A program made the position numbers and the translations under genes. From contig MCFH01000020.1 of the NCBI GenBank assembly GCA_002104945.1, forward strand, positions 186,001-250,000: 64,000 nucleotides of DNA, in the 5' to 3' direction. Within the stretch, counting starts at the first letter, position 1, and each line of letters starts with the position of its first letter. The stretch is from Piromyces finnis finn. Its lineage: Eukaryota; Fungi; Neocallimastigomycota. Below the pieces are notes generated by a model. The model had not been told where the DNA came from. It was given only the letters and a program-made list of their open reading frames with translations, and made no database searches. Shown in pieces: positions 1-61,610 of this stretch.

Positions 1-1723
1 ATGAACAAATTATTTATTGGAAATTAATTAAATATTATTTTTTTGCTTATACTTTATTTTATAATAATAAAAGCAATAATATTTAGAACTAACCTTAATT
101 TTATTGTTATTTATTTTTACTTATTTATTTATTTATTTTTTATTTTATTTTATTTTATTTTTTATTTTTTTATTTTATTTTTTTTTATTTAAAAGAGTTG
201 TTTTGAAAGTTTTTTTGTTTATTTATATGGATTAATAATTTTTCTTTTTTTTTTATTAATTTATAAATTTCATAATTAAATATCGTTTTAATATTGTGTA
301 ACATAAAATATCTCCCATAAAAACATGATTATTTACTATAGAATAAAAACCTGAATTAATAATATTGATTCTGCAAATATTTAATTGTATTGTATAACCA
401 ATATTAATAATGCTGTATAAAATGCGTTTTATTCATAGTAAACCTATTGTAAGTTTCTTCTTCGATATAATATTCTTGGGAGTATTCCTTTTTAATATTT
501 AAACAAATTTTTATACATTAATGTATCATTTTTATGTTTTATTTGTTTAGATAATTACCAATATATTTATAGGGATGTTACACATAAATCTACAGATATT
601 TTAAGATTAAAAAAAAAATATCATAATAAAAGAATGAAAAACGAAAAACGAGCTATATAAAAACATTGAAAAAAGATAAAGTCATTCTTAAATAAGTAAT
701 TAAACTAGGAATTTCTTTAAACTATATATAGCTAAAATGAGATAATCTATATTATAATTTTGAAATTTTTGTTTTTTTTGTGTCTAATTCTTTTTCTTTT
801 TTTTTTTTTTTTTTGTTAATTAATATAAAACAAATTTTTAATTAAATTATTCATTATTTGTATAAATTATTATTTTATTAAAATAATATATTTTAAAGAG
901 TTTAATTACGATAAAAAATTTTTTTAAGAATTTGTATCACCTTTATTTTTTTTCCATAACCAAATTTGGAAATGATTTAAAATTTTAATTTCTATGGAAT
1001 AGTAATAATATATATATATATTTTAATTATATATTATTCATATATTAATAAATTCACCTTTAAAAAAAGTTATTTAACGATCAATATTTAATTCTTTGAA
1101 AGAAATTAAACCTTCTATTACTAATGATAGTGGTTATTATTAATATAAAAATAAAAATAAAAATTAATAATTAAATAAAAAATACTAGAAAAAATAATAA
1201 AACAGTTTTTGTATAGTTTTATATTTGTTATTTTAAATATTTTTATTTTTCTTTATATAATAAATGATACTATAGTTTTTTTAAAAAATTATAAGAATGC
1301 CATTATAATTAAATAATTTTAAAAAAATATAATTTTCTTTCATTACAAAAGCTATATTTTTGTTATGTAAATAAGTAATGATTGTATATATATCTAATTA
1401 TTGGAATAGGTAATGAAATATACTATACTATAAATAATAAATATAATAGGTATACATACATTTTTAATACATTATTAATGGAATAATGGAAAATATATTA
1501 AAACAAAATATCTTTTTTTTTTAGATTTTTATTTATAGAACATAATATATATAAATAAACATATAATATATATACATAATTTGTACTCAAAAAAAAAAAA
1601 AATTAATAATTTGGAGTCTCTAATTTATATATACCAAATTATACATTAAAGATATAATAGTAATATTAAAAATATTCTTTTTTTTTATCAAATAGATATT
1701 TATCATATTTATCATCAATTCAT

Positions 1724-3949: not shown

Positions 3950-6459
3950 ATTGATTACTTATTATATATAATTTATGTATTTAAAATTGTGGTTTTTTTT
4001 AGTTTTATCTTTTCATAAAATGTTTTATTTTTAAAAAATTATTAATTTTTTATATTTAATATTACTAATTTATTTTATCAAAAAATAAAAAAAAAAAAGG
4101 TTGATTAAAATAATTATGTACAATTTTGACCTTTATAAATATGTTTATTAAATAATACTTGTGTAATATGAATGTAATATATAAAATTATAATAATTAAA
4201 TTTTAATTACTATAATAATATTTTATAATTAATAAATTTTTAATATAAAAATGTTATACAAAGTATTATGTTTTCTTAGTCTATTACATATTTGTAAATG
4301 ATATTATAGTTTTTAATAAAATATATGTAATAAATTTATAATTTTTTAAAAAAAAAAGTAATTGTTAGTGTAACCAATTTATTAAGTAATCAAGAATTAC
4401 TTATTGAATATAATCTAATTCCAAGAATTTAATTAAACTATATTAAAACCATTGGTTAAAATATTTTTTTAAATAGTTTGATAATATGTACGGCTTAATC
4501 TTAAAGAAAAATAAAAGAGTTTATTAAATATAATTTTGAAATATTTATATAATTTCATTTGTTATCTTATTTTTAAATTATAAAAGAAATCATTACTTTT
4601 TTAATATATGCCGTTAATGATTTATAAAAAAAAAAAAAAAAGAATATTGTTAATTATTATTTAATAATTTAATAGATTCTTGTTATGCAAAAAATATAAA
4701 TAAATATTTTATATTTTATAATACTATTATTAGATATTCAAGTATAATCTATATGTTAATATTTACTTTTTATTAACAAATAATTATTAAATATGTAATA
4801 CATTTAATATATATAAATAGAAAATTATGAATAATGATAAAAAACATATTTTATAAATATTAAAAGAAAAAGAAATATTTTTGTATACACATAACAAGCA
4901 ATCAATAACAAAAAAAGTTATAATTAGAATTAAACAATTTTTATCAAAGTTTTATTGATGATCTACCATAAAAAAAATTATTATTTTGGTAAAAATAATT
5001 TCAAGCATCTCTTAAATTATTTAAATTATTTGGATTTAAATAATTTGAAATTTATTATGATACATGCTTTTATGATTTCTTTTTTATTAATATCTTTTAT
5101 TAATAATTTTAAATTTCTTATTTAAATGAGTTGTTTTCTATTGTTTTATTGTTATTTATTATACTATTATACTATATATATGATTATTTTGTTTATTATA
5201 AATAAAAATTATCAAAAATAAAAAAAAATCTATATAAAATTTATTCCATATTTTATAATATCAGAAAAGCCATAAATTTATGTTATTAAATATTACCCTA
5301 ATCTATATAAATTTTATAAATCATTTCCTATATATTGATATTTAGAATTTTACTGAACTTTTTTAGTTTTTTTGTAGTCTTTGTAATCCAAATCTTATAG
5401 AGCCTTAAAGCTGGTTTCAATTTTTATTTCTATTAACCAATTATATTTTTTTTCTGATTTTATGTTCAATAAATTGAAAAAAATTTTTGTTAATAATTTT
5501 TATTATTAATATCTCATAATTCAAGATTAATGCAATCATAAAAATAATGTAGAATATTTTATATTTAAATAAATTGCACAAGCATAATATTCATTATATT
5601 TAATTTTATAAAATAATGTAATTCATATCATATACCATAATTATATTACATATTGTTAAATGTATTGAAATGTATTGTAATAAACATATTATATAAGCCA
5701 CAATATATTTGCTTATATGTACATAATGGTTCACTAGGAATATGTAAATTATTTAATAATTATAGCTCTCATTATTATAAATTATAATAGGTTAACTACA
5801 AAATCTAAAGATGATTTAATATACTTCCTACTGCTTCCTTTAGCCAGACAAAAATTTTTATACCAGATAAAAAAGTGGAAGAAGTTTAATTACACAACTT
5901 CTAACACTACTAATTTATATACTTTTTAGCCTAAAAGTTTTTTTTTCAAAGTTTAATATAATAATTGAGACTTTTTATTTTTATGCTTTTATTTTTTTTA
6001 AAAAAAAAAAAACATATAATCTTAGATTATTATTATATTTTCATATTTTCATCAATATCAATATAAAATATATATTTAAAATTAATAAATATAAGAAGTC
6101 TTTTAAATACTATAAAATATAAGTTATAATTTTTTTTTCTAGTTATGCTGCTCCTATATTTTTTTTTAACTATTTTATATAAATAACATTATAAATTAAT
6201 AAATAATTAAATAAAAGTCTAATTAGGATTAAAGAACTTGAATAAAAGAAATGAATTAATATAATAATTATATTTTATATTTTATTTACATTTCTTTTAG
6301 AAAAGAAATCAATTATGCTATCAATAATAATAACTTTATAAATAATTAAAAAAAATATAATTTTTTAATTAAAATCAAGTAAATATGAATAAAGAAATGA
6401 GTTGATATAATGTTTAATATTTATAATTTCTCATAATTAAAAAAACTAGTTATAATTTT

Positions 6460-50633: not shown

Positions 50634-53600
50634 ATGAGTAATAATATAAGTAATTCACCTAATAATGAAACCTTTTCATTATTTAATGAATTTAAAAAAG
50701 AGACAAAATATTACTTAAGAGGAAACAAAATTCCTCATATTCATAATAATGATTTAGGTATTAATAATCCTGAAATTCAAGAAATGTCACCAATTGATAC
50801 TAATAAAAATACTAAAAATAAAAATAATATTTTTTCAAATTTATCTTCTGAAAAAAAGATACATACAACGGAAAAAAGAAAATCAATTGCTAAAAGCGAT
50901 AATGATTCATCAAAAGCAAAATCATCCATAAGTAATAATAAGACTGATTCAAAAACATCTATCCATTCATCAAATTATATCACACCATCCTCAAAATTAA
51001 ATTTAAAAAATAGTTTAACAAAGAAAATTAAAATTAAAATAATTAATTCCACCACCACTAGTAAGCATTCTGTATCAAAAAATTCTACTTTAAAATCTAA
51101 ATTAAATGAGCATGAAAAGAAAAAAACCATTGCCAGAAATACAAAAATTCAAGATTTATTAAAAAAGGTAGATGAAAAGAAAAAGGAATTAAATGACTAT
51201 TATTTAAAAAAAAATCATGATTCATCAAATAAAAAAAGAAAAATATCAAATTTTGATGAAAATCTCCATAAAATTAAAACTGGAAATACTGATAAAAGTT
51301 ATTCAATAGATAAAGCTTCAGAAGAACTTTCTTTATATAAGGAATTCAAAAAGGAAAATATAGATGAAAATTCTAATAATGATGAATTGCATACAAGTAC
51401 TTTTAATGAAAACGAAAAAAGTAATTCAAGTATAATGGAAATGAAAAAGGAGAAAGAAATTATTGATGAAATAAATAATACAACCATTAGAGTAAATAAA
51501 AATGAAGCAAATAGTAATTCTAATGATAACGATAATGGTAATTCTAAAAGAAAAAATAAAAATGATAATGATAATAGTATAAATACTATTAACAATAGTA
51601 ATAATGTTAATAATAATATTATGAATATTGATAAAATAGAAAATAAACAAAAAAGTGATAATAATGATTGTAGTACTAACAGCAATGTTAGTAATAATAA
51701 TAATAAAAATAGTAGCAGTAATAGTAATAATGATGACAATAATAAAACAAATAATAATCATTATCATAACAATAATAACATTTGCAAAAATATTAGTAAC
51801 ACCAATAAAATACATAATACTAGTATGAATAATGATATGAATCAAACTGATGACTTTCTTTTAAAAATGATGAATATGAATTTAATTGATAAAAATAAAA
51901 ATAATAATGAAGAGAAGAAGGTAGGTAATGATAAAGAATTATCAGAAGTTGAACTTTTACTTTTAAATAGTTACAATACCTCTATAAAGACTCTTTTAAA
52001 AGAAGAAGAGAATAACAATATTAAAAATAATAATGAAAAAATAGAAAATAATCAATTGTATTTCAATAACAAAACAAAACCATTAAACCAGTATAATATG
52101 AATTTTTCTGATATAAATTCATCACAAACATCTTCTAATTCACTATTTATTGATAATATTAATAGTAGTCAAGAATCATCAATGAGTAATTCTGCACATC
52201 TTTATGGAGATAATAATTTTTTAAATAATTATACAAATCCAAATGATTTTTTATTTGATAATCAATTTAAAAGTTTATTTGTAAAAGGTAGTATTTTGAA
52301 AAAAATTTTTTTTTTTTTTTTTTTAATATTCCTTTTTTCATTTTAAACTAACTATAAAATTAATATTATGTATAAATTTATTTTTTATTTCTTTTTTTTT
52401 TTTTTTTTTTTTTTTTGATGGGAATTTAGGAAAACTAGATAATATGATTAATTCACCAGATATTTCTCAAAGAAAAAGAGGTAGAAAAAAGAAAGTGGTC
52501 TCAAACGATAATGCAAATAATAACCAAGAAAAAGAAAATAAGAAAAAATTATTATTAGAAAAAAATAATACAGTTAAGAATTCTGAAAATCCTGATTCGA
52601 ATAATACTAAGGATCAAAGTAGCCTACCAAAAGTTAAAGATAGTTCATATTTTATTGAAAAACGTAAAAGAAATACAGAGGCCTCGGCAAGATTTCGTGC
52701 TCGTAAAAAGCAAAAAGAACAATCTATTAACAATTTATGTCAAAAGTTAGATATCGAAAATAAAAAATTAAAGTATCATTTACTACTTAGTGATAAAAAG
52801 ATTAAATGGTTAGAAGAATTACTTTTAGAAAAAAGTAAATTAGGAAAGGAAACACAAGAAAATTCTAACAAAAATTTAAATAATATTATGGAAACTAACC
52901 ATAATTATTCCTTTCTTCCAATGAACAATTCCTTTAATTATAATTATGGTAATGAGTACCAAGAAATGAATATTAATTTTAAAACGTTATCTCCAACAAA
53001 ATCAAATAATAATATAAATGAAAAGTTTAATTCTTTTTTAACTAATACCCCAATTCAAGGATTAGCACCTAATATCTTTAATCCTTCCCTTCTTAAAAAT
53101 AAATCATATGAAAGTATGAAAAAACCAAATCCGTGGCAAGATATGAATAATCCATTTCTAGATAAAAAGGGAATTGGTAATACTAATATAAATATTGTTA
53201 TAATAAATTGTTAAGAGTCATTAAATTTTATTAATATTTTATATATGTATATAAATTAATATGTATATAAAAAAGATGACAATATTCAATTTAATATGAA
53301 TGAATCTCTATTTAAAAAACCAGATTTCTTAATGAATTTATTCAACAACAGCAATGGTAATAATAATAAACAAGATGAAGATAAAAGAAAAAAAAAGAAA
53401 AATTCAAATACACCTTCAATGTCAAACATGAATAGTACAAGTTCTACTCCTAATAAACAAAAATCAAAAGATATTTCTCAACTTAATCCTACCGAAATAA
53501 ATATAAATAATTTATCTTCCCCTTCAACTTCACTTTACAATCCAATTCACGATGGGAATAATACAACGAATCTTTCTAATTTTGGTAAATTTGAATATTT

Positions 53601-54540
53601 TTATTAGAATATGAAAATTAATGAAATTTATCTATGATTATATTTTATATATTATTAACCTAAACATATAAATTTATTTTATATATAATAAAACAAAACA
53701 AAAAAAAAAAAAGACTATGAACAATATTATCAACAACAATTCCAAATGCAATTTCAACTTCAACTTCAATTACAACTTCAACAACTACAAAATGAACAAT
53801 TATTATTACAACAATACCATCAACAACAATTACCACAAGAAAATACACCATTATCTACTATGAATTTATCATCACCATTTTCATTAATCCCAAACACCGC
53901 TTTTAATAATAATCATCATCATGATAATAATACTAATGACAATTATAAAAGTAATACTACTAATAATAATAATTACCCATTGGATAATGACAGTAATAAT
54001 AAATCTAATACAATTAATGATAATAACAGCAGCAACAACATTAACAATAATGATGCTGATGACAATATTAAAAATAAAAGGAATGAAGATAATAACAATA
54101 CAGGTTCTACCTCGCCTCTTATGACATTTTCTTCTCCAACACTATCATCAAATTCCTTTCTTCCATTGATGATGTCAAATTTCAATAGTGAATTAATGAA
54201 CTTCACCCAAAAAACACCTGAGAAAGAAAAACCAGGAAATTCAACAAAAGATACTACAAATGAAAATAGTCATAGAACTATCAAAATTAAAACAGAAAGA
54301 AAAAGGGAGGATCATGATTCAACGCAAGATCAAACTTCTTTTCTTGATTATCAATTTTCTACTCCTTCCACGTCAAAAAATATTAAAACTTCACTTGATT
54401 CATTATTTCAAACAGATTTACAAGAATTAATGGAAAATAAATATATTAACTTATCACCATCAAATAAAATTTCTACCACTGCTACATTAAAAAACGAGAA
54501 ATCTCTATCTCCTGAATCTATTACAATTAAAAAAGATTAA
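50634..54540 (+). CDS. bZIP transcription factor, CYS3/MetR-like basic region, with Asn- and Gln-rich regions; about 4 exons
   Basis: KRKRNTEASARFRARKKQKEQ...KIKWLEELL resembles the Neurospora CYS3 / Aspergillus MetR bZIP. The flanking ORFs are joined by GT-AG introns. Confidence 0.75.
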
Positions 54541-54955
54541 TTATTTTTACTTTTATATTCGTTTTTTTTTTCCATTGTTATTTAGTATAGTTTTATTAAA
54601 AGAAAAAAAAAAATCCTATATTATTATTCCAATAATATTACTCTAAATAGTAAATAATAAAAAAATATTTATACAATAAATCATTTTTTTTTCCATCATT
54701 TTAAAATAAGACTTTTAAATGGTATTTAATAAAAAAATTAACACTTTCAACACTTTATATTTTCTACACAATAAACTTTCAATTTATTTTTTTTACATTT
54801 TTTTATTTATTTTTTATTCTTTATACATTTTTATTTTTATATTATAAACAGAAACAAAGAGACACATAATTACCTAAATAAATTAAAATAATATAATAAT
54901 TAATAATCTTATTAATTTTTTATTTATAATAATAAAATATCAATTTTAAATAATA

Positions 54956-55034
54956 TCAGTAATAAGTTTAAGGTAGCTAGTGGTTTTTCGTCATTTCCAA
55001 AAAGGAAAATAAAGTCAAATGCCTAAGTCATCAT
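54956..55034 (-). ncRNA. Box C/D snoRNA, snR13/SNORD15-like (copy 1)
   Basis: Minus strand AUGAUGA...CUGA, 79 nt. Guide AGGCAUUUG is complementary to LSU rRNA CAAAUGCCU, and a second element GCUACCUUAA is complementary to adjacent rRNA UUAAGGUAGC. 18-bp perfect terminal stem (54938-54955 / 55036-55053). Confidence 0.88.
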
Positions 55035-55213
55035 TTATTATTTAAAATTGATACTTTTATTACATTCATCTATTCACCTTATTCAAGAATTATCCTTAAC
55101 ATATAAACACAGTCTTTTTCTTCCTATTTATATTTAAAATATCTTTTAAAAAAAATTATTAGCTACTATATTCAAATTTTTTATTATTAAATATTTTGTT
55201 TGTAATATTTATT

Positions 55214-55292
55214 TCAGTAATAAGTTTAAGGTAGCTAGTGGTTTTTCGTCATTTCCAAAAAGGAAAATAAAGTCAAATGCCTAAGTCATCCT
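55214..55292 (-). ncRNA. Box C/D snoRNA, snR13/SNORD15-like (copy 2)
   Basis: Same 79-nt core with box C variant AGGAUGA; 16-bp perfect terminal stem (55198-55213 / 55294-55309). Confidence 0.88.
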
Positions 55293-55488
55293 TAATAAAT
55301 ATTACAAACTTTTTAAATCTTACAATTTAAATCAATATTCACCTTTTCCATTTTTATAAATAAGGAAATTTTTACTTTCAATCCACCATTTTTTCTTTCA
55401 CCTATTTATAAATGATATATAATTGGTAATTAATTTTACTCTAGCAATTATAATTAATTTATATTATTTGGATTTTTGATTTATATTT

Positions 55489-55567
55489 TCAGTAATAAGT
55501 TTAAGGTAGCTAGTGGTTTTTCGTCATTTCCAAAAAGGAAAATAAAGTCAAATGCCTAAGTCATCCT
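55489..55567 (-). ncRNA. Box C/D snoRNA, snR13/SNORD15-like (copy 3)
   Basis: Same 79-nt core with box C variant AGGAUGA; 15-bp perfect flanking stem (55470-55484 / 55572-55586). Confidence 0.88.
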
Positions 55568-56340
55568 TTACATAAATCAAAAATCCTTCTATTTATACTA
55601 TATTATTGATATATTTAATATTTACCTTTTATTCTATGTATATTTAATTATTATATTTATATACATATTTATACGTTCTTGTGAAAATAAATAGTAAACT
55701 TTTTCAAATTTTTTTTCATTTTATATACTAAAATCATTAATAAAAATATAAACCAATCATAACAAAATTTAAACTTACTATTAACCAATAATAAATTCTT
55801 CAGATTTGATAATGAAGAATTTATTTTAATATCAAGTATGAAATTACAAAACTTTAGTTACAGAAAAAATAAATGTAATTTTTATTAGTATTTTATATAC
55901 ATGTACACATCTTTATCTATTTTCTATAATTATATTTTAAGTTGTTAATATTATTTCAAATAAAGTCTCAATTATTATACTAATTAAGAAATATTTTATA
56001 GAAAAAAAAATATTAAAAATGTTATATAATAAAAATTTTTTCCAATATTTTCTAAAAGGTTTTTTCATTTTGTTAAAGTAACATAGAAAATAAAAATAGT
56101 AATGTATACATAAATTGATATGTATACATTTATTTAGAAGTAAATATTACCATTTATTTTTAGACGAGATATGATGTCTCCAATGAATAATATAAACTTT
56201 TTTATAAAATTGAACAAATAAATTTTTTTTTAAAATAAATGTAAATCTATGAAACTAATTATTAAACCTATCAAAAAATAGTTTCATAGAGCTATTAATG
56301 GTAATGATTATTTTTGTGAAAAATGTTGTGAGATCATCTA

Positions 56341-57123: not shown

Positions 57124-58998
57124 TTTTTTTTTTTTAACGGCATCAAATATTTTAAACTTTATTATTAATTTAATTAAAATTATAATACATGTAATATAAA
57201 AATTAAAATAAAATAAAAATAAAAAAAATATGTTTAAATAAACACAAATGAATAAAAATTCTAGTAATTTTAATTAAAATAAGAAAGCCACTATTATACT
57301 AAAGTATAACAATTGTATTTGACTTCCAATAGGACACCGAGCCAAAGATCAAAATTTTGTCATGGAACAAAATTATGATCTCCATTGGTTGCGCTGGCCC
57401 TCCTGGCCTGTCTTACTGTTTCTTCAGCATTGACGCTCTTGGATGTTGCTTCAAACCTTTTGAACATTGTCCATTGCTGGCCAATAGCAAAAGGCATGAT
57501 TTTGGTTAGAAGTTCCGCGGTTACTGTCAAGAATGGTGTTCCTTCGTTAGTACCAGATTGAATCTGACGCTTACAAAGTTCTTTCCATTCCCTTGAATTG
57601 TAATTAATATTGTTAAAACTTCTTCCCCCAAGAAGGAATTTAAATATTTCACTGCACACACTAGAATAATCATACACATTAATATTCACCGGATTATTAG
57701 AACTATTACTATCATTAACTAAATTACTATCTAAATTAGAATTATTATCTTCACTATTGCTATCATTACTAATATTATTATTTCTATTATTGTTATTATT
57801 ACTATTGTTACTATTACTATTGTTACTATTACTATTGTTATTACTACTATTGTTACTATTACTATTAATGTTATTACTATCTCTACTGATATTATCAATT
57901 TCATTATTATTGATAGGACTATCGGAATTACGTTGACTGAAAAAATTTAATAGCTGGACTATAGAATCATAATGTTTAATACGGATATCTCTAAATGTTG
58001 GACAATCTAATAACCAATGTTTAATACTTTGATCTCCACACTTGCAACATGGACAGTAGTTAGGACAAACTGGATCAACAAATTTGGCAGCTTTGGCAAC
58101 TCTAGCATCCAACTTGTATCCGCTTCTTGCTTTCAATAGCCAGTAGAAGCCATAGGCAAACTCTGGGTACTCATAACATAATTTAATAAAATCTTTAGTT
58201 TCAATAAATTTATTATCATCATAATATTGCGCTTTGATTGAATTCCCTTTGAGATCTTTCCAATAAAAGTTTTTAACTGCTTTAACATCTCCATGTTTCT
58301 TTAATTTTTTATCAAGTGTCCTACTTGATTTGCACCACGTGTATTTTCTAAATTTAGGAATGTAATTGACAAGGTGTGAGATAATACAATTTGAGTTTTT
58401 CCATTTGTTAAAACATCTAACCTGAGCTAACGCACAATTGGCTGACAATGGAGGAATATTCAAATCTTTTGAGATAGAGTATAAAGATATAAACGATACA
58501 GCTTTATGAACTCCGGCAACCCATCGTATTCCTTTGTTAACATGCTTCTGAGCAATCCTAGACCTAGCTTTGTTGGATCCAAGTAATGGTGCAAAGTATG
58601 AAACTCTGCTAATCACTTGTGAGTTAAGTACTAGTTTTTTGAAAGGAATAGGAATATTAGGATTTCTTAAGAATTTACTGACTGAGAATAGCCCTTTCAA
58701 AACCTTGTTATTAAGATCTTTAATTACTGGTTTAAGGGACAGATTCTTATCAAATGGAACACCAAGATAAGTATAGCAATCAGTAGTTGGAATGGGTTGT
58801 CCTGCTAAGTAAAATGTTGGATCTCTCTTGTTCTGATTTTCTATTGATTCAGGACGAATCACCATCGTTGAACATTTCTGGATACCAAATTCCATTTCAT
58901 TATACAATGCCCATTCATTAACTCTTCTAAGCATCTTTTTTAAGCATCCTCTTGTTGGAGCACAAATAACTATATCATCTGCAAAAAGTCCACCACAG
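57087..58998 (-). mobile_element. 5'-truncated non-LTR retrotransposon (LINE-type): C-terminal RT from the FADD motif, Cys/His zinc knuckle, 3' UTR and poly(A)
   Basis: GLFADDIVICAPTRGCLKKML...MEFGIQKCSTMVI...YTYLGVPF; CPCCKCGDQSIKHWLLDC and LLGG; poly(A) (T-run about 57087-57135 on +); no endonuclease or RT N-terminal half; ORF uninterrupted. Confidence 0.9.
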
Positions 58999-59110
58999 TG
59001 ACTTCGAATGTAACACCGAGCCAAAGATCAAAATTTTATCATGGAATAAAATTATGATCTCCATTGGTTGCGCTGGCCCTCCTGGCCTGTCTTACTGTTT
59101 CTTCAGCATT
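58999..59110. repeat. 112-bp perfect direct repeat, right copy
   Basis: Identical to 56975-57086; abuts the truncated RT 5' end. Confidence 0.9.
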
Positions 59111-59757: not shown

Positions 59758-61610
59758 TTAAGATCTATTTTCAAGGATAGCCTTAGAAACCTTAGTTGGT
59801 CCAAAGAAGTTGGCATCATCCTTTTCTGGGTAATCTAAAGTGTAGTGTAAACCACGAGATTCCTTTCTACGAAGAGCACTTTCAACAATAAGGTATGCAA
59901 CATCAGCAATATTTCTTAATTCAAGGATATCTGGAGTAACCTTGTATTGCCAGTAGTATTCTTGAATTTCACTACGTAATAATTCTAATCTTCTCTTGGC
60001 ACGTTGAAGTCTCTTGTTGGTTCTGACAATACCAACATAGTTCCACATGAACTTTCTAACTTCTTCCCAATTGTGGTAAACTAATACAATTTCATCATTA
60101 GTAACAGCCATACCTGGATCCCAGGATGGTGGGGAAAGATTAGTTGGAGCATCCTTGATAAGTTCCTTGGCTAATTCAGAAGCACGATGACCGTAGACAA
60201 GACCTTCTAAGAGAGAGTTAGAAGCTAAACGGTTAGCACCGTGTAAACCAGTGTATGAACATTCACCAATAGCTAAAAGATGTGGAATAGTGGTTTGACC
60301 ATGGGTATCAACAACAATACCACCACACATGTAGTGAGCAGCTGGAACGACTGGAATTGGTTCCTTAGTCATATCAATATTGAATTCAAGACATTTTTGG
60401 TAGATAGTTGGGAATCTTTCATGAATAGTTTCAGCTGGTAAATGAGTCATATCTAAGTAAACACATTGGTCACCAGTACGTTTCATTTCAGCATCAATAG
60501 CTCTAGCAACAACATCACGTGGAGCTAAAGCACCCATTGGGTGGTATTTTTCCATAAAGGTTTGACCATTCTTTAACTTTAATTGACCACCTTCACCACG
60601 TAAAGCTTCACTAATTAAGAAACTCTTAGCTTTTGGATGGTATAAACAGGTTGGGTGGAATTGATAGAATTCCATGTTAGCAATTTCAGCACCAGCACGG
60701 TAAGCCATAGCAACACCATCACCAGTAGCAACATCTGGGTTAGAGGTATATAAGTAGGTCTTACCAGCACCACCAGTAGCTAAAGTAACAACACCTATTA
60801 TTCATTAAATTTTTTATAAGCAGTTTTAGTTATTTTGTTTAAGTATTAAAATTTTATAAATCTTTTTATTTTGTTTTTAACACTTACCACCTAAGAAGGT
60901 ATCAATTTCACCATTTTCTCTTAAGACATAGGCACCAATACAACGGTTGGAAGAAGAGTGACCAATCTTTCTTTCAGTAATAAGATCAACAGCCATACTG
61001 TTAGAGAAGAAAGTAATGTTCTTTTCAGCTTCACAGGTAGCAAGTAAAGTTCTTTGAACTTCAGCACCAGTGGCATCAGCAGCATGAGCAACACGGTAAG
61101 TTGAGTGACCACCTTCTCTGGTTAAATCTAATTTGTCATCATCACCCTATAAAATATTTACAATTTATTAGATATTAGTATTCATAGGTTTTCCTTTTTT
61201 TTACATATTTTAAAATTTTTATAATTATTATTATTTATAAAGATATAAACTCAATTATTTTTTTATTAATTTTACTGAATTATACTAATAATTTTTACCT
61301 TTGTGTGTGTGAAATTGGCACCAAATGAAATAAGTTCCTTAATATAAGCTGGACCTTCAGTAACACAAAGTTTGACAGCTTCTGGATCGTTAATGAAACA
61401 ACCAGCAGTCATAGTATCCTTAATATGGGCTTCAAAAGTATCATTATCAGAAAGAACGGCAGCAATACCACCTTGAGCATAATTAGTAGCACCTTCAGTT
61501 AAAATACTCTTGGTTAAAACAGCAACAGTACCAACTTTTGAACAGTTGAGAGCAAAAACAAGACCAGCAACACCACCACCAATAACTAAGAAATCGTATT
61601 TACGTTCCAT
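59758..61610 (-). CDS. nadB: L-aspartate oxidase (de novo NAD synthesis), bacterial type; 3 exons (61610-61299, 61146-60888, 60794-59758)
   Basis: [15 protein letters not shown] motif, [79 protein letters not shown]; two in-frame GT-AG introns. Confidence 0.95.

Follow-up and report, generated by a model that had tools for sequence, protein, structure and literature searches.

A minus-strand interval of the Piromyces finnis genome (54874-55625) carries three direct repeats of a short element, which raises the question of whether they encode a functional RNA, on what this RNA would act and how it would be released from its precursor. Positions are those of the window, i.e., the whole 64,000-nt stretch of contig DNA analyzed here. 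The initial annotation had proposed three intronic copies of one snR13/SNORD15-like box C/D snoRNA within a non-coding host transcript. By repeat comparison, we confirmed three 79-nt copies (54956, 55214 and 55489) that are identical except in box C and separated by unrelated spacers, and the part that they share corresponded exactly to the interval from box C to box D. A box C, a box D and an internal AUGACGA (C') were likewise recovered on the minus strand of every copy, as previously described. The cores and their boxes are the following:

55489..55567, minus strand: snoRNA copy 3 (5'-most), 79-nt core from box C AGGAUGA to box D CUGA
55214..55292, minus strand: snoRNA copy 2, 79-nt core, box C AGGAUGA
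54956..55034, minus strand: snoRNA copy 1 (3'-most), 79-nt core, consensus box C AUGAUGA
55567-55561, 55292-55286 and 55034-55028, minus strand: box C, AGGAUGA in the first two and AUGAUGA in the third
55492-55489, 55217-55214 and 54959-54956, minus strand: box D (CUGA)
55011-55014 and 54988-54994, minus strand: internal parts of copy 1, respectively the D'-like CUUU and the C' box AUGACGA, together with a UUCC/GGAA hairpin

The sole difference among the three cores was located at position 2 of box C, which is U in copy 1 and G in copies 2 and 3. The box C of the two latter copies consequently has one mismatch to RUGAUGA, and the CUGA of box D is present in all three. From 5' to 3', each core comprises box C, a 13-nt antisense stretch, a CUUU that would be a degenerate D' box, the UUCC/GGAA hairpin, the C' box, a 28-nt stretch and box D. 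Outside the cores, the units and their spacers could not be aligned beyond the level given by AT-rich DNA. We searched the whole genome (56.46 Mb, 232 contigs) both at the DNA level and with a guide pattern, and these three copies, and no others, were recovered. The triple repeat is thus more than chance. Between 53 and 58 kb of the window, we did not detect any other rRNA complementarity of at least 11 nt with a box context that would point to further snoRNAs in the same host.

Each core is directly bracketed by its own inverted repeat, which can form an external stem, with 80-87 nt between the arms:

55470..55586, minus strand: external stem of copy 3, arms 55572-55586 and 55470-55484, 15 nt, 100% complementary
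55198..55309, minus strand: external stem of copy 2, arms 55294-55309 and 55198-55213, 16 nt, 100% complementary
54934..55057, minus strand: external stem of copy 1, arms 55036-55057 and 54934-54955, 22 nt, 95% complementary

The three inverted repeats are mutually unrelated in sequence. When folded with its flanks, each copy adopted a structure with the stem closed that was better than 199 of 200 dinucleotide shuffles, with z-scores from -2.7 to -3.4. Since the three stems have no sequence in common, the helix has been preserved and the letters have not. These long AU-rich stems would juxtapose boxes C and D in each copy, and the three private compensatory stems offer a neat natural example of a structure that is kept while its sequence diverges.

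We then determined the complementarity of the repeated core to the rRNA of the fungus itself. The 18S, 5.8S, 28S and 5S were located with Rfam in its own rDNA unit (contig G000:C153), all perfect snoRNA-rRNA matches of at least 8 nt were screened against these four RNAs, and the LSU was numbered from the start defined by Rfam (L038:1474). The rDNA repeat (L038, G000:C153:1-10000) measures 8534 bp, and its 5S gene is located on the opposite strand (5379-5497), between the LSU and the next SSU. The two longest complementarities were those of GCUACCUUAA with LSU 2413-2422 (10 nt) and of AGGCAUUUG with LSU 2423-2431 (9 nt). Their targets abut and form 19 contiguous nucleotides (LSU 2413-2431), and the rRNA of this region reads as the universal UUAAGGUAGCCAAAUGCCU. 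The corresponding guide elements are located as follows:

55549-55557 and 55501-55510, minus strand: D' guide and accessory guide of copy 3
55274-55282 and 55226-55235, minus strand: D' guide and accessory guide of copy 2
55016-55024 and 54968-54977, minus strand: D' guide and accessory guide of copy 1

The segment that precedes the D'-like box pairs with LSU 2423-2431 (CAAAUGCCU), which is the context of yeast A2279-A2281. If CUUU is taken as D', the fifth pair upstream involves the third A of CAAAUG, i.e., LSU nucleotide 2426, the equivalent of yeast A2281, and the A2280-equivalent is the neighbouring nucleotide 2425. The guide duplex has just 9 bp, and the D' box lacks the GA dinucleotide (CUUU/UUUA). 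Compared with the extended D' box of snR13 (UCGA/CUCGA), the CUUUA found here occupies the same register and has the same leading CU, without the GA. A methylation guide at box D was also considered and rejected, as no rRNA pairing of at least 8 nt adjoins this box. Between the end of the 10-nt element and box D there are 8 nt, a distance at which the fifth-nucleotide rule excludes a methylation guide, and the element is consistent with an accessory guide. The proposal that the copies guide methylation of the A2280/A2281-equivalent was thus supported by complementarity for the sequence before D', and did not hold for the sequence upstream of box D, where the pairing stops 8 nt short. In the mechanism that we propose, the 9 nt before CUUU would pair with LSU 2423-2431, so that fibrillarin would meet the A2281-equivalent (nucleotide 2426, and perhaps 2425 too) at five pairs from D', and the 10-nt element 8 nt upstream of box D would pair with the adjoining LSU 2413-2422 and strengthen the short guide duplex. 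The predicted methylation is one that we take to be universally conserved, next to helix 69-71 of the large subunit.

The initial annotation had looked to the Rfam snR13 and SNORD15 models to recognise the copies, and this expectation failed: at gathering score nothing was returned over the whole window, and the snR13 model reached only 17.2-17.7 bits against the 47 needed (E about 5). At a permissive E-value, the window gave weak matches only to snR13, TtnuCD15, SNORD11 and SNORD24. SNORD15 was absent from the matches listed, in which snR13 was the one member of clan CL00045 shown, and a genome-wide search with RF00069 returned nothing. The genome-wide search with RF01223 placed first, at 30.5 bits, a segment at L042 1501-1598 (G000:C154:162177-162274, plus strand). 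We rejected this match as a false positive, since it lies inside an open protein-coding exon and has neither boxes nor guide. Because a coding exon outscores the copies, the verdict of the snR13 model, in either direction, carries little weight in this genome, and the identity of the RNA rests on its guides, boxes and stems. The cmscan alignment to the snR13 consensus displayed the same GCAUUUG, the same AGCUACCUU, an A-rich run before AGCUACCUU and ACUU before box D. Overall, the assignment to the snR13/SNORD15 functional type was supported by the D' and accessory guides on the fungus's own LSU and by the layout known from the literature, and these are very probably real snR13-type snoRNA genes. 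Judged from the sequence, the RNA is the functional counterpart and, given its guide layout, the probable orthologue of snR13. These results also show that Rfam covariance models both miss and mis-call short snoRNAs in genomes of about 15-20% G+C, where annotation therefore has to rest on guide-target logic.

Relatives of this RNA were also sought in metagenomes. A strict pattern gave no match. A looser pattern, made up of just the two antisense elements and CUGA, gave 15 metagenome loci, none of them AT-rich like a gut fungus and about 10 of which were chance matches in coding DNA. Four loci (L027, L032, L035 and L037) exhibited features beyond the pattern, including a box C located 3-5 nt before the guide. 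A D'-like tetramer occurs in the same register in these four loci, the forms among them being CUGA, CCAA, CCGA and AUGA. A C' box UGMCGA is present in L027, L032 and L035, with UGAUUCGA at this place in L037, and a hairpin between D' and C' was observed in L027, L032 and L035. Short terminal stems were seen by eye in L032 and L035. RNAalifold did not predict any pairs on the cross-species alignment, because this alignment was too gapped. On a GC-rich metagenome contig, L037 contains two identical copies, 547-611 and 1482-1546 (minus strand), 935 nt apart, which indicates that tandem duplication of this guide occurs in another eukaryote. A full-text literature search for a snoRNA study in Neocallimastigomycota found none.

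The second part of the question concerns the release of the three copies. Their surroundings suggest the following arrangement of introns and exons, listed in the order of the putative transcript:

55402..55625, minus strand: putative intron 1, 224 nt, donor AAAAG|GTAAAT (55625), acceptor AAATAG|G (55402)
55343..55401, minus strand: putative exon, 59 nt, GC 0.24, stops in two frames
55124..55342, minus strand: putative intron 2, 219 nt, donor AAAAG|GTGAAT (55342), acceptor AAATAG|G (55124)
55323-55318, minus strand: alternative donor GTAAGA in intron 2
55078..55123, minus strand: putative exon, 46 nt, GC 0.26, stops in all three frames
54874..55077, minus strand: putative intron 3, 204 nt, donor ATAAG|GTGAAT (55077), acceptor ATTTAG|G (54874)
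55063-55058, minus strand: alternative donor GTAATA in intron 3

The coordinates of the GT..AG intervals of 204-224 nt, and of a box D lying 82-90 nt before each 3' splice site (87, 90 and 82 nt to the proposed acceptors), held on re-examination. So did the description of the 46- and 59-nt exons as devoid of a meaningful ORF, with stops in three of three and two of three frames when the exons were read one at a time. In the 59-nt putative exon, the third frame is open, and its first start codon is the third-last codon. The flanking 150 and 250 nt were full of stops, and no ORF of at least 50 aa was found there on the minus strand. A look-up by exact ORF for transcript contigs over the locus found none.

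To evaluate these putative introns, we used as a reference 17 introns of the same genome defined by protein homology (in actin-related and tubulin genes, and in the NadB-like gene of the window). These measured 87-312 nt, GTAAAT was their commonest donor hexamer and nearly all their acceptors ended in AG. The lengths and acceptors of the three putative introns fit this set. As for the donors, all 17 reference introns start with GTA, against two of the three here that start with GTGAAT, and GTA-type alternative donors occur 14-19 nt downstream of these proposed GTG donors. The motif AGGTRAAT is present at 8 sites in the window on both strands (128 kb), as many as in shuffles, and three of the eight lie here, on the minus strand, 58, 50 and 43 nt upstream of the three C boxes. 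The chance of such a placement is roughly (60 x 6e-5)^3. In addition, the putative exons have a higher G+C (0.24-0.26) than the flanks (0.13-0.14). At the 3' side, every copy has an AG whose end is exactly 48 nt past box D (55442, 55167 and 54909, minus strand) within spacers that are otherwise unalignable, which is unlikely by chance (roughly 0.004, an estimate). This AG may be an alternative acceptor, a branch region or signal, or residual homology, and its presence in all copies makes the acceptors ambiguous. In introns 1 and 3, a GT comes directly after the proposed acceptor (55401 AG|GTGAAA and 54873 AG|GTAATT, minus strand). The idea of a host with one intron per copy was thus sustained by the placement of AGGTRAAT, the lengths, the acceptors and the G+C, and was weakened by the two GTG donors and by the presence of alternative donor and acceptor sites.

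The main rival to this best reading is a precursor, either polycistronic or transcribed individually for each copy, that would not be spliced at all, the copies being released endonucleolytically, for example by RNase III acting on the 15-22 bp stems, and trimmed by exonucleases, with the GT..AG intervals unused. The snoRNA clusters of yeast and plants are processed by endonucleolytic cleavage followed by trimming. Such a route would account for stems whose length exceeds what is required to bring boxes C and D together, for two GTG donors of a type absent from the 17 verified introns and for the ambiguous choice of acceptors. However, long AU stems may serve just stability in an AT-rich genome, the motif AAG|GTRAATA has persisted in each of the three upstream spacers, which can otherwise not be aligned, with three of the eight sites of the window located here, and the spacing, the lengths and the contrast in G+C fit the introns and exons of this genome. 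We consider the unspliced precursor to be rather improbable on balance, and that each copy resides in its own spliced intron is probable.

Two further readings bear on the copies themselves. In the k-turn, Snu13/15.5K recognises a protruding nucleotide, which is the U at position 2 of box C. Only copy 1 (AUGAUGA) might then give a stable snoRNP, copies 2 and 3 (AGGAUGA) being impaired or decaying, without any threefold dose; the consensus RUGAUGA indeed has a U at the position where these two copies have a G (PMC5389607). Yet over the other 78 nt both match copy 1 completely, in the midst of flanks that have diverged past alignment, and each has retained a fully paired stem of its own of 15-16 bp, a pattern in favour of continued selection or conversion; moreover, a box C of the GGA type is also found in the metagenome relative L035. 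The decay of two copies out of three is therefore, in our opinion, quite unlikely. Finally, the absence of an Rfam match at gathering score and the very AT-rich, repeat-prone genome could suggest a chance repeat or satellite with no RNA gene. Against this, the identity stops exactly at boxes C and D, the three stems differ entirely in sequence and are compensatory, and the two best matches to rRNA lie side by side at a known methylation site. A chance origin appears already contradicted by this evidence and is extremely improbable.

The locus is thus best explained as the source of one box C/D snoRNA in three functional copies, and this snoRNA corresponds in function to yeast snR13, N. crassa CD1 and human SNORD15.

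The genes located on both sides of the snoRNA locus are as follows:

52444-54540, plus strand: bZIP-domain gene, converging on the snoRNA locus
57360-59024, minus strand: LINE-type ORF, between the snoRNA locus and the NadB-like gene
59758-61610, minus strand: L-aspartate oxidase (NadB-like) gene, three exons and two GTA..TAG introns

No relatives of the last exon of the bZIP gene were detectable. Close relatives of the NadB-like gene were found just on contigs that end 282 nt past the stop codon or on mRNA-sized contigs, all of them too short to reach the snoRNA locus. Neither the metagenome patterns nor these neighbouring genes led to an orthologous locus in another gut fungus. Among its matches listed, a few were fungal-like, at 85-97% identity, and the rest, at about 67-74%, were mostly metagenome proteins, those named for an organism being myxobacterial. 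The NadB-like gene seems to be of bacterial origin and to have gained its introns after its acquisition by the fungus.

Taken together, what is directly observed comprises the three copies with their boxes and stems, their complementarity to rRNA and the absence of further copies from the genome, and the following sequence of events can be proposed. The three copies would most likely derive from one minus-strand non-coding Pol II transcript with a separate intron, about 200-225 nt long, around each of them. Splicing, debranching of the intron and exonuclease trimming down to the snoRNP would then set each copy free. Transcription and the exact splice sites are predictions in this model, as are the methylation and any benefit of dosage. 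It is also conceivable, and we suggest this only tentatively, that the host is a dedicated non-coding gene whose sole cargo is three copies of one rRNA guide, a mini fungal array of the SNORD116 type, in which the cores would be kept identical by gene conversion, the stems would evolve separately by compensatory change and the AGGAUGA copies would give snoRNPs of different assembly efficiency or regulation. The locus is unannotated and apparently the sole source of the guide for this conserved LSU methylation, its function being predicted. It leaves known snoRNA biology unchanged: we regard it as a genuine housekeeping locus of an ordinary kind, in a phylum that has received little study. Its whole construction follows patterns documented in Neurospora, yeasts, flies and mammals, and it is useful for annotation and unsurprising.

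The closest parallel is with S. cerevisiae. The yeast snR13 directs methylation of L2280/L2281 via a D' guide; its D' box is atypical, and it requires an additional region of base-pairing (PMC5389607). It belongs, with human U15, to the snoRNAs with conserved extra pairing beside the target, and its guide is among the shortest (PMC3116282). As in snR13 (RF01223), the D' guide core GCAUUUG targets CAAAUGCC (A2280/A2281) here, the accessory guide AGCUACCUU is complementary to the rRNA beside this site, and a long spacer with ACUU precedes box D, at which there is no methylation guide. In contrast, the core is 79 nt long against 124 nt in yeast, D' is CUUU(A) instead of (C)UCGA, and the targets of the guide and accessory element abut, whereas they overlap in yeast. 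The yeast snR13 gene is an independent single-copy unit, as opposed to the three tandem, probably intronic copies described here.

In N. crassa, the snR13 homologue CD1 is intronic, and most snoRNA genes are singletons (PMC2780460). In this fungus, the distance from the donor to an intronic snoRNA is mostly 41-60 nt, and the non-coding hosts of its clusters have only short ORFs and a single snoRNA in each intron (PMC2780460). The RNA described here resembles CD1 in the use of a D' guide and in its intronic, here putative, position, and the distances of 43-58 nt on the 5' side match the range of N. crassa (PMC2780460). CD1 is nevertheless 125 nt long and single-copy, and the N. crassa clusters carry different snoRNAs with no repeats of one, in contrast with the 79-nt core present three times here.

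In humans, 28S A3764 is guided by SNORD15A (PMC5389715). The locus resembles SNORD15A/B (U15) in that the equivalent adenosine would be targeted and in its conserved extra base-pairing. SNORD15A and SNORD15B are two copies in different introns of one protein-coding host, RPS3, in contrast with a host that is here putatively non-coding. Repeats of a snoRNA-bearing intron followed by a short non-coding exon form the mammalian SNORD116 and SNORD115 arrays and the isoforms a/b/c of Drosophila dUHG. The plan of the repeat unit proposed here is alike, the difference being that it comprises only three units, has a canonical rRNA target and occurs in a fungus.
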